Source: Ylistrum balloti (lineage: Eukaryota). Taken from it: a stretch of 64,000 bases of DNA. The position numbers were made by a program, and so were the translations under genes. Below the pieces are notes generated by a model. It was not told the origin of the DNA. It saw nothing but the letters and a program-made list of their open reading frames with translations, and made no database searches. Within the stretch, counting starts at the first letter, position 1. The number at the start of each line of letters is the position of its first letter. Shown here one piece after another: positions 58,831 to 61,555 of the stretch. The stretch is taken from the NCBI RefSeq assembly GCF_031769215.1, contig NW_026781959.1, positions 62,001 through 126,000 on the forward strand. Direction: 5' to 3'.

Positions 58831-59791
58831 GTCTCGATCTAGACAGGGAAAGGAAGTACATCTCTCCACCCAGAAATGGAAATTTTGACTTTATCTCTAG
58901 TCAGAAGGGACAGACATTGGCAACTACTCTTGAATATTCCAGTTCAAATTTGAGTAATCCCTACAGAAGTCTTATGAAGACAAAATTGAAGATGACAGGC
59001 TACAAAAATGGATGCTTTACATTCTTGGAACAAGGTCACATAAACCATTACGTGAGACAATGTAATCAGACTTAAAAAATAGTAATATGAGTAAGTGTCC
59101 AAGCAGGGAAAAAACGCTATGAAAAAAACATCTGAAACTTTCACAAAAATAAAAAGATAAATATCACACTGTAAGGAATTTATTTGTTTCTGAACAACAT
59201 TGTCATGACATTACATTAAAAAAAAATCCGGTTGATATGAACATTTTCTGTAGAATATGTACATACTTATAGTATATTGCACCATTTATTATCAAAGGAA
59301 AATGTGTTCTTCCAATAAATATACATTAGAACGCTTGCATGTAATGTAAAAATCTGTTAAACAATGAATAATCTAAGATTTATCTAAATATATCAATGAG
59401 CATATATTAATGCATAGAACATTGCAGGCATGATGGCAACTTACAAATCTAGTAATAGATAAAATAAATCAACAGATTATTTCTTAAAATACATCAAAAA
59501 TCTTAATGTCATTAAGACTATTGTAAAAAAGTTATTGTTGTATAACAGAGAAATTCAACTGTCCTATATTGACCTTCAGCAAATATTAATTTATTGACTT
59601 ATAAAATAAAGGACTTCAATATTCATGATAAAGTCACATTACAGTACTGTTGATACAAGCAGCATATATGATCTAATGATACATTTTATTTTTATGCATT
59701 TTAAATTCTTAATACACACAAAAAAGGCACTTCTCAAAAATACTTAAATTTACAAATTACTGATATACAACCTTCATAAACTTCATAAACA

Positions 59792-60322
59792 ATGGTGAAG
59801 ACGAAGACTACGCCAAGGAAAACCTCGGAATCCGGGTGGAAGCCTAGGATTCCACATATTTTATGCGGAAAAAGCTATGCCAGCATCAAGAGCCTGAGGA
59901 GGCACGTAAACGTTAATCACTCATCCACAAAGACCTGGTATAAATGTAAGATCTGCAAAAGGTCTTATGGAAGAAACTCAGACTACTTAAGACATCAAAA
60001 ATCGGAACATCCCATGATACAAGGTTACAGAAATAATACAAGACAATACTAGGGAGGAGGCGAAAGCACCATCCAACAAGAGACCATCTGAGAGCAAGTG
60101 ATAGATTTTAAAGTTCCGGGTTGGCACAAAATCGGCGGAGGACCACCCATGTACTGGACCACAATTGAGCAGTTGAAGGTCGCCCTAAGCGACGACTCTT
60201 CAGAAGCATCAGGATCCATGGCCAATACCTCAGAAAGTGAATATATGGGAGAGAAGAGAGATTATAAACAATATAATTATGTTTCGGCATCTACATCCAC
60301 ACTGTGTTTAGATGAACACTGA
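59792..60322 (+). pseudogene. Small C2H2 zinc-finger ORF with two in-frame stops, inside a hammerhead-bearing unit
   Basis: Finger 2 YKCKICKRSYGRNSDYLRHQKSEH is intact; finger 1 HILCGKSYASIKSLRRHVNVNH lacks its first Cys. The same frame continues past TAG (60050) and TGA (60092) into the 60098-60322 ORF. Confidence 0.65.
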
Positions 60323-60560
60323 TAGGATTATAGTGAAGAATTGACTCATTAACCTACTAACCGTGATGGAGATAGTGTTATTTATAACTGATAACATGTA
60401 GAATCTTTAAGTATAGAGTACAGGACGTACAGTGATTCTTGTTACATAGAGCTAGCATCATATACTACAGTGAACAGACTTTGAATTGTTACGTCACAAT
60501 AACACATGTACTATTTATAAATTTGAGGGAGCCGCATTTCATGTACTTTCCTCATGTTTG

Positions 60561-60592
60561 CCTGAAGAAGCCCGGGAGGGCGAAACCGGTAG
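60561..60592 (+). ncRNA. Minimal type I hammerhead-ribozyme motif (Penelope-like-element type)
   Basis: CUGAAGA-A, stem II GCCC[GGGA]GGGC, GAAA, palindromic stem III ACCGGU, cleavage triplet GUA (after 60591), AATAAA at 60600. Stem I is poorly paired. Confidence 0.65.
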
Positions 60593-60977
60593 ATGGTATA
60601 ATAAACCCTATAAACCATCACTCCACAGACTGTTGTGATTGATTCTTATTGTCTGACCTTCATAAACTTTATACGTAATGGATAAATTGTAAAATTTTGA
60701 TACTGTATAGTGAGACAAAATTTTCCGTCAAATATAAATTATGTATAGCAAATTTCACTGGATATTTACAAATATCAATATTGAAGTATGAGCATGTGAT
60801 GTTTGTATTGGCACAAAATCAGTCATGATTACACAATACTGTGTCAGCTAAACAGGAGTACTAGCACCTTAAACACCATGCATCATAAAGTTCAGAGATT
60901 TACAGGGCAAATGCAACATCCCATCTCGATTTTCATTTTTCCTCTGTTGCCTCTAAATTCCAAAATTCAGGAGCTTA

Positions 60978-61021
60978 GCATGACTAACAAGTCATGGAAA
61001 GAGGACACAGCTGTATGATGG
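60978..61021 (+). ncRNA. Heavily decayed hammerhead relic, same family as 63134-63222
   Basis: gcatga CTAACAA GTCA..GGAC ACAGCTGT A tgatg, compared with gcatca CTGACGA GTCC..GAAACAGCTGT A tgatg. Confidence 0.5.
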
Positions 61022-61209
61022 AGTTCAATTCATTATTTGGCTCTACCATATCCAATTATACATGTGTATCAACAGGTATAATTCACGTCAATGTCTTTTG
61101 TACCATCTTTTATGACCGATAGCAATTTGTACTCTTTGAAACAAATTTCCTTTATCATAAGAACTAAAAACCCCTACATCGATAAAATTCTACTATATAA
61201 TGTACTTCC

Positions 61210-61555
61210 CTATAGCTAATAACCCCATTTCTTATCCCTTTCCTGTACCCTATGACTGACGACACCATTTCTTATCCCTCTCCTGTACCCTATGACCGAC
61301 GACCCAATTCTTTCCCCTTTCTATACCCTGTGGCTAATAACCCCAGTTTTTATTTCCTTTCGGTACCCTATGACTGATGACCCCATTTCTTATCCCTTTC
61401 CTGTACCCTATGACTAATGACCCTTGTTCTTATCCCCTTCCTATACTCCATGACTAATGACCCCAGTTCTTTCCCCTTCCTATACCTTGTGACTAATAAC
61501 CCCAGTTTTTATCCATTCCCTGTACCCTAAGACTGATGACCCCAGTTCTATGACC
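61210..61555. repeat. 39-40 bp diverged tandem repeat, ~9 copies, downstream of the F-box gene stop
   Basis: tgactgatgaccccatttcttatccctttcctgtacccta-type units. Confidence 0.9.

Follow-up and report, generated by a model that had tools for sequence, protein, structure and literature searches.

The locus and its boundaries

The 64-kb stretch of Ylistrum balloti DNA analysed here (the window) contains a decayed, 5'-truncated copy of a Penelope-like element (PLE), which belongs to a family that we designated as family A (Table 1). This copy consists of the second open reading frame (ORF) of the element, which encodes a zinc-finger (ZF) protein, the 3' UTR, a hammerhead ribozyme motif and the 3' tail only. 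The reverse transcriptase (RT) has been lost through truncation, and the second hammerhead of the element is absent as well. Over its full length, the window copy is 79-91% identical to copies on contigs C896, C69, C672 and C575.

Table 1. Features of the truncated PLE copy and its flanks (positions in the window).
Feature	Position	Strand	Basis or remark
Left copy of the target-site duplication (TSD), 14 bp, ACCTTCATAAACTT	59770-59783	.	Exact repeat of 60656-69; empty site in X4 and X9 contigs
4-nt filler CATA, 5' junction	59784-59787	+	Between TSD and first base common to other copies; alignments
Decayed 5'-truncated PLE copy, family A, 869 bp	59788-60656	+	Homology to other copies
ZF ORF remnant (second PLE cistron)	59792-60322	+	Open for 86 aa; homology to intact versions, Pfam C2H2
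3' UTR of the PLE copy	60323-60552	+	Alignment
Minimal type-I hammerhead of the PLE kind	60555-60598	+	Stem I 60555-61 with 60592-98; covariation
Hammerhead core CUGAAGA	60562-60568	+	Sequence
Unpaired A	60569	+	Before stem II
Stem II GCCC/GGGC, loop GGGA	60570-60581	+	Sequence
GAAA	60582-60585	+	Sequence
Palindromic stem III ACCGGU	60585-60590	+	Sequence
Cleavage site after A60591	60591	+	Predicted from the motif
3' tail of the element	60592-60656	+	From the cleavage site to the end of the element; tail plus hammerhead correspond to the ~95-nt piece present at >30 other genome sites
AATAAA	60601-60606	+	~10 nt past the cleavage site; similar distance in most, not all, families listed
Right TSD copy, 14 bp	60656-60669	.	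First A common with the last base of the element

A preliminary description of this DNA had reported a 13-bp direct repeat (59771-83 and 60657-69) on both sides of the ORF and the hammerhead. The repeat is present, but its two copies (ACCTTCATAAACTT) are 14 bp long and each start one base earlier. No other match to it was found in the 64-kb window at ≤1 mismatch; its chance expectation is 0.06, and two matches occurred in 0 of 100 shuffles. Contigs from public read sets (X4 and X9) join position 59769 directly to 60656, skipping 886 bp, and the repeat is therefore a target-site duplication. In these empty-site contigs the 14 letters fit either side of the join, and the flanks are ~1% divergent from the window. 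Furthermore, both insertion junctions are bridged by contigs of run X1. The insertion is polymorphic, or at least missing from close relatives.

A plain TSD had been the fallback explanation for the repeat in the preliminary description, and it is the one that held. Besides the empty site, each of the three other copies checked (L014, L015, L034) is flanked by its own duplication (11-13 bp, all different). The 13-mer, for which constancy across copies had been considered, is locus-specific and lies outside the region common to other copies. Filler of 9-12 nt is present at the 5' junction in two of these three copies, and of 4 nt in the window copy. At the latter junction, part of the target sequence recurs as CATAAAC, suggesting joining via microhomology.

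Dispersed or tandem copies of the unit had been proposed as a further check. The 899-bp unit was searched against the window's own assembly (648 Mb, 1372 contigs), and dispersed copies are indeed there: the 41 matches comprise 7 long copies and more than 30 pieces of ~95 nt, which contain the hammerhead and the tail only. Homology in every long copy starts at 59788 and ends at 60653-60656; the direct repeat is outside this shared part, and the sequence 3' of the element end varies between copies. Tandem copies were not found in the window, as neither a tandem repeat over the unit nor any other hammerhead was detected in its 64 kb. The suggestion that the unit be read as a circle or as a head-to-tail array finds no basis at this locus, where a single hammerhead has no tandem partner. 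Among the public read sets, no RNA run contained this sequence.

The window copy is heavily decayed, with four internal deletions and only 90% identity to the closest relative, which contrasts with the low divergence of the empty-site flanks. This mismatch would be explained if the polymorphism is old, or if the copy was made in trans from a template in a degenerate state. In run X10, one contig matches the window from 59789 onward and is preceded there by 22 unrelated letters; it could be a unitig artefact, or a second copy with an identical 5' end and, as such, the sole indication of a discrete sub-element. In three short family-A copies, the first bases of the hammerhead are the start point.

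The hammerhead ribozyme

As stated in the preliminary description, a hammerhead motif is located near the right end of the unit and is followed by AATAAA, a putative poly(A) signal. Its attribution to the Penelope type is borne out by the traits published for minimal PLE hammerheads (see below) and by covariation. For the latter, 23 distinct hammerheads were extracted, and the 15 with intact upstream sequence were aligned together with three from other sources (n = 18). In these 18 copies, 88.9% of the cells are paired in the hammerhead scheme, compared to 29-44% if the partners are slid by 1-3 columns. Six hammerhead pairs changed on both sides, and the observed pairing and covariation were reached in only 0-2 of 500 shuffles. 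The fourth pair of stem I is compensatory (CG, UA, GC, UG), as are changes in stem II (CG to AU or UA). In stem III, the palindrome CCGG is replaced with CUAG in three lineages; this exchange keeps the palindrome and thus supports pairing between two molecules. Altogether, the covariation supports all three stems of the predicted hammerhead fold. As stem III would consist of one A-U pair and a palindromic loop, cleavage should be possible only as a dimer.

Neither the window nor an intact sister copy gave a hammerhead in Rfam at the gathering score or at E ≤ 10, because the library models miss minimal stem III variants. This negative result extends to Hammerhead_1, the model that had been recommended for a check. 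Minimum free energy (MFE) folding of single hammerheads and of dimers resulted in the textbook dimer in family B alone and is not diagnostic.

In the assembled window copy, G-A and U-U mismatches adjoin the core in stem I. They are due to a shortened sequence in front of the core: the distance from ACTTT (end at 60549) to the core (start at 60562) is 15 nt shorter in the window than in sister copies. Over 60247-60657, a 426-nt contig from run X1 departs from the window only by these 15 nt, which it retains, and its stem I strand is intact. The stem I defect of the window may reflect allelic variation or a difference in the assembly.

The truncation series and the parent element

Whereas the window copy has its 5' end just before the ATG of the ZF ORF, at least six other long copies (C896, C69, C575, C340, C90, C672) continue upstream of its ATG. 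Their extensions all have different ends (~60, 175, 265, 345, 390 and 520 nt), and these scattered 5' ends evidently form the kind of truncation series that target-primed reverse transcription would produce. The upstream stretch of the family-A copies translates as the C-terminus of a GIY-YIG endonuclease, whose stop is located 2 nt before the ATG of the ZF ORF. The claim that the ORF and the hammerhead belong to one mobile unit is sustained by the copies that reach that far, in which the two are linked. In two copies (L010 and L011), an internal deletion has removed the ORF. No RT or ZF ORF was detected upstream of the short tails by local tblastn.

Family A has no full-length copy in the assembly; none of its copies reaches the RT, and the longest extends ~520 nt upstream of the ZF ORF. 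The complete architecture was therefore derived from sister families that are ~70% identical. One of them, family B (~70% identical), is present in four copies that are ~99% alike. Its long frame contains RVT_1 (E = 2.9e-8) and GIY-YIG (E = 9.2e-6) domains according to Pfam. The C85 copy of family B possesses one open RT-endonuclease (RT-EN) frame of 934 codons, followed by a ZF ORF of 192 aa. Two identical hammerheads, 3924 nt apart, flank these ORFs on each side, and the complete unit is ~3.9 kb. The preliminary description had suggested a search for PLEs with a shared hammerhead; the full units of the related family B have a pair of hammerheads. A -1 frameshift between the upstream ORF and the RT, as well as a second frame change, proved, by comparison with C85 and C58, to be private defects of the C310 copy of this family.

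In addition to the upstream hammerhead, family B has the 113-bp 5' start of the unit. These first ~113 bp recur at 40 places among the matches listed, and in the loci examined they are located directly after the 3' end. Furthermore, inverted 5'-truncated partners are present on C69, C337 and C861 and at a Pecten maximus locus. The window copy has neither the 113-bp tail nor an inverted partner. A Cys pair between GIY and YIG, followed by His residues (CCHH), was read by eye, and so was, by comparison with PMC8557442, a linker motif CX3CxxC upstream of the GIY motif (CGKNCRIC or CGRNCKIC). Read in this way, the linker points to the Neptune/Nematis type.

The ZF ORF is a second cistron

The ZF ORF of the window starts 8 nt after the left repeat. 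Its first stop is at 60050-52 and its natural stop at 60320-22; the frame is also disrupted by internal deletions, another stop and, after residue 75, a frameshift. The preliminary description had seen here an ORF with two C2H2 fingers and two stops. The ORF, the stops and the C2H2 character were found again, but finger 1 has lost its first Cys, which is replaced with His (PHILCGK vs PCILCGK elsewhere), so that finger 2 alone is intact. Judged from its sequence, the ORF of the window is dead.

Intact versions of this ORF, 180-192 aa in length, are found in L002, L007, L049, P0001 and L069, and in the Y. balloti genome they represent families A, A', B and E. The ZF protein of family E is the 'EVI1-A-like' protein of Y. 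balloti in the NCBI database, and host-like names (EVI1-A-like, PRDM16-like) have been given to sister ORFs. Between families, pN of the ZF ORFs is 0.09-0.37, with pS of 0.62-0.97 (i.e., near or past saturation); for family A versus A', dN/dS is 0.075. The ZF ORF is evidently a conserved second cistron under purifying selection.

In nine lineages, among them Pecten maximus and two unrelated public contigs, the RT-EN stop and the ZF ATG are -1 to +4 nt apart (UGAUG, UAAUG, UAAnnAUG, UAAnnnnAUG). This fixed stop/start geometry argues for termination-reinitiation on one mRNA, and it is most likely in this way that the ZF ORF would be translated behind the RT-EN. The same order of RT-EN, ZF ORF and hammerhead is found in the Logan contig L067, which has an uninterrupted RT-EN frame of 670 aa, and in the ENA metagenome contig L068; both are only ~70% identical to anything in the Y. 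balloti genome. In Pecten maximus, the order recurs in a 5'-truncated copy (L069, chromosome LR736854.1) whose ORF is intact and which has a hammerhead as well as an inverted partner; this copy is located within an annotated host gene.

In an exhaustive profile search of 1.84 billion representatives, five true clusters were retrieved at the top of the list, amid multi-finger proteins. A word search with the whole ORF matched one protein, from the Y. balloti genome itself, and a profile search with the non-finger half added Pecten maximus. The C-terminal half of the ZF protein gave no usable match in the ESM Atlas. In the AlphaFold model (mean pLDDT 64) the two fingers are confident, and the remainder is a low-confidence chain with conserved short motifs. 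The N-terminus resembles the histone H3 tail, with ARTKQTPRK in two families.

In the PLE papers searched, neither a downstream ORF nor reinitiation is described, and the ZF ORF is provisionally regarded as undescribed. Tentatively, and giving it somewhat less than an even chance, we propose that this scallop PLE lineage possesses a true accessory gene, of a kind new to endonuclease-bearing (EN+) PLEs. It would encode a ~190-aa protein, translated by reinitiation, with an H3-tail-like N-terminus, two C2H2 fingers and conserved C-terminal motifs, which may anchor the RNP of the element on DNA or chromatin, or act towards host readers as a mimic of histone H3.

Origin of the unit

In our opinion, the unit is very probably a dead insertion of an autonomous EN+ PLE in Y. 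balloti. The observations that carry this conclusion are the TSD with its empty site, the series of truncated copies, the layout of the full units, the selection on the ORF and the covariation of the ribozyme. With no RT, a broken ORF, a broken finger 1 and a lone hammerhead, the window locus is to all appearances wholly non-functional.

For such an insertion, a PLE transcript would have been reverse-transcribed at a nicked target, starting at its 3' end. Copying would have stopped, or the cDNA would have been joined, 4 nt before the ATG of the second ORF, so that the insert was limited to the second ORF and what lies 3' of it, namely the 3' UTR with the hammerhead and the tail; the 14-bp TSD would have been left by staggered nicks. 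The complete element starts with an upstream pseudo-LTR carrying a hammerhead, followed by the ~113-bp 5' region that is often recopied after the 3' end (the 'tail'). The long ORF then encodes, in this order, an N-terminal region, the RT, the CX3CxxC linker and the GIY-YIG endonuclease with CCHH. After it, the ~190-aa two-finger C2H2 ORF follows, and then the 3' UTR with the second hammerhead. The hammerhead would cut in tandem or multimeric transcripts of full units, presumably in the dimeric form.

The preliminary description had proposed an RT-less, ribozyme-processed coding element instead, and had conceded that this would be refuted if the unit were only a piece of a complete RT-encoding PLE with a known upstream ORF. 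Such a piece it is, except that its ZF ORF is the downstream second cistron rather than a known upstream ORF. The RT-less interpretation holds that the ZF ORF and the hammerhead form a discrete element with its own 5' end at the ORF start, which is processed by the ribozyme and mobilised in trans. The 5' end of the window copy, 4 nt before the ATG, would agree with this, and the X10 contig may hold a copy with the identical start base; the decay beyond the ~1% flank divergence means that the template may already have been non-autonomous, and animal retrozymes have been published as derivatives of PLE pseudo-LTRs. Nevertheless, we regard such an element as very unlikely. The window copy is the only one of the seven copies bearing the ORF start that does not reach the endonuclease ORF, the other ends being scattered; it has no tandem repeat or second hammerhead in the window, its flanking repeat is a locus-specific TSD and not a terminal redundancy, and the ORF is broken here and intact only behind an RT-EN ORF. 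Alternatively, a host zinc-finger gene or exon might lie beside a PLE fragment, or might have been picked up once by a PLE, with the linkage confined to this locus. Despite the names EVI1-A-like and PRDM16-like, this is hardly conceivable: in at least nine diverged lineages from three sources the ORF is placed after the endonuclease stop and before the hammerhead, the distance of its start from the upstream stop is always in the range of -1 to +4 nt, and it shares one TSD-bounded insertion with the hammerhead.

As a dead insertion of an EN+ PLE, the locus itself is a polymorphic transposon fragment and does not represent a new class of ribozyme-processed coding elements. Its significance lies in a PLE lineage of pectinid scallops with a conserved second cistron, which is found in two public contigs (L067 and L068) as well. 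To our knowledge, the mechanism of PLE integration is still poorly understood. An accessory ZF protein with an H3-like tail, whose start is tied to the RT-EN stop, would offer a concrete handle on the way in which some PLEs locate or handle chromatin. For annotation, it should be noted that PLE ZF ORFs are filed as host genes (EVI1-A-like, PRDM16-like) in scallop genomes.

Comparison with known systems

Dead-on-arrival, 5'-truncated LINE-like copies resemble the window PLE in that they share one 3' end while their 5' ends vary, are flanked by TSDs, and show filler or microhomology where the 5' end joins the target. The window PLE differs from them in that it has no poly(A) tail and in its enzyme, a GIY-YIG/telomerase-like RT. 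Overlaps of the UAAUG type are known from bicistronic retrotransposons and viruses, e.g., silkworm SART1. The stop/start overlap in SART1-type elements implies termination-reinitiation, and it probably does so in the scallop PLE as well. However, the RT is the downstream cistron in LINEs, whereas in the scallop PLE the RT-EN is located upstream and the small accessory protein downstream.

Metazoan non-LTR retrozymes are tandem repeats of 150-450 bp with a canonical hammerhead per monomer; they are expressed as circles, and no protein-coding gene has been reported for them (PMC7229834; Li et al. 2026 preprint). In common with the window unit, they have a hammerhead and an AT-rich sequence, and their mobilisation is linked to PLEs. 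The window unit, in contrast, is present as one TSD-flanked insertion of 869 bp that contains a broken gene and a lone minimal hammerhead: short head-to-tail hammerhead repeats are absent, the gene is the remnant of a selected protein gene, and the hammerhead is minimal rather than canonical.

The minimal hammerheads of PLEs are characterised by an unpaired base, a short stem I and a minimal stem III, and they occur as single motifs in truncated PLE copies and also as inverted pairs (Cervera and De la Pena 2014, PMC4209133). The scallop hammerheads differ in a stem II of 4-6 bp instead of the 7-8 bp in Schistosoma (PMC4209133), and in nothing else that is material.

The closest elements are the EN+ PLEs with a linker zinc-finger motif (Craig et al. 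2021, PMC8557442); for PLEs, the papers searched describe a single ORF and, optionally, an upstream ORF1. Their 'tail' has been described by Craig et al. 2021 and attributed to internal initiation of reverse transcription by Frangieh et al. 2024. The sister-family full units have the characteristic features of EN+ PLEs, i.e., the RT, the GIY-YIG/CCHH, the pseudo-LTR with a hammerhead pair, and the tail with inverted partners. In fact, the scallop lineage agrees with the Neptune/Nematis elements (PMC8557442) in the RT with a C-terminal GIY-YIG/CCHH, the CX3CxxC linker and pseudo-LTRs that result from partial tandems. It also shares with EN+ PLEs the 3' hammerhead, the tail, the inverted truncated partners, TSDs of variable length and the abundance of 5'-truncated copies (PMC8557442). 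The tail is ~113 bp in the scallop lineage, compared to 30-40 bp in the EN+ PLEs described (PMC8557442). A further difference from these elements is the conserved downstream ORF for a two-finger C2H2 protein in the scallop lineage.

Short and internally deleted copies

Three independent short family-A copies of the Penelope-like element (PLE) begin with GTCCTGAAGA, i.e., with the first bases of the hammerhead, and the hammerhead start is a recurrent 5' boundary. Two of the three (L014 and L015) are bounded by a target-site duplication (TSD) of 13 bp, with 9-12 nt of filler separating its upstream copy from the element; at the third, L013, a TSD was looked for and none was found.

At two other loci, L010 (1386-1735) and L011, a reverse transcriptase (RT) fragment (corresponding approximately to residues 304-391 of the ORF on the Logan contig L067) abuts the final ~220 nt of the 3' UTR together with the hammerhead. 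These are internally deleted derivatives without the endonuclease and without the zinc-finger (ZF) ORF.

The window copy in sequencing runs and its downstream flank

A contig from the public run X1 matches the window copy exactly except for 15 additional nt at 60549-60561, which comprise a G-run and an intact stem I strand; the contig stems from another allele or from a very close paralogue, or else the assemblies differ at this point. An 866-nt contig from run X10 (organism C) matches window positions 59789-60546, lacks the window-specific deletions and carries 22 unrelated letters before the match at 59789. It may represent a further copy ending at the ORF1/ORF2 junction.

Just downstream of the PLE copy, contig depth over ~50 bp (61007-61057) exceeds 2500 in two runs, and this stretch is therefore a high-copy repeat.

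Copies elsewhere and their annotation

In the same genome, contigs C340 and C90 both carry one and the same pair of PLE copies, spaced ~6 kb apart, pointing to haplotigs or to duplication of the segment. On contig C281, more than 10 PLE pieces lie within 60 kb (535-595 kb), forming a nest of insertions.

PLE ORFs have been entered as host genes in scallop genome annotations (L069; protein records P0001, P0005, P0151 and P0153), labelled EVI1-A-like, PRDM16-like or uncharacterized LOC. An annotated CEP152-like gene spans the PLE copy of Pecten maximus (L069).

Coordinates of PLE copies and associated features
Feature	Location	Remark
Tandem array	window 61208-61549	40-nt period; follows the ~50-bp high-depth stretch
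Short family-A copy	L013:1501-1596	
Short family-A copy	L014:1501-1592	
Short family-A copy	L015:1501-1596	
PLE copy pair	C340:313695 and 319907	
PLE copy pair	C90:770497 and 776233	
Locus L069 (holds a PLE copy)	LR736854.1:9413806-9424381	Pecten maximus
H3 tail-like ZF N-terminus	window 59792-59830	
H3 tail-like ZF N-terminus	L049:1872-1901	
H3 tail-like ZF N-terminus	L054	family C
H3 tail-like ZF N-terminus	L067:2015-2044	
H3 tail-like ZF N-terminus	L069:5001-5030	

N-terminus of the zinc-finger protein

The N-terminus of the ZF protein resembles the histone H3 tail. In families B and C, ARTKQTPRK follows the initial Met, its counterpart in H3 being ARTKQTARK; most of the remaining lineages keep x-x-T-K-x-T-P-R-K, which is missing from the family E protein.
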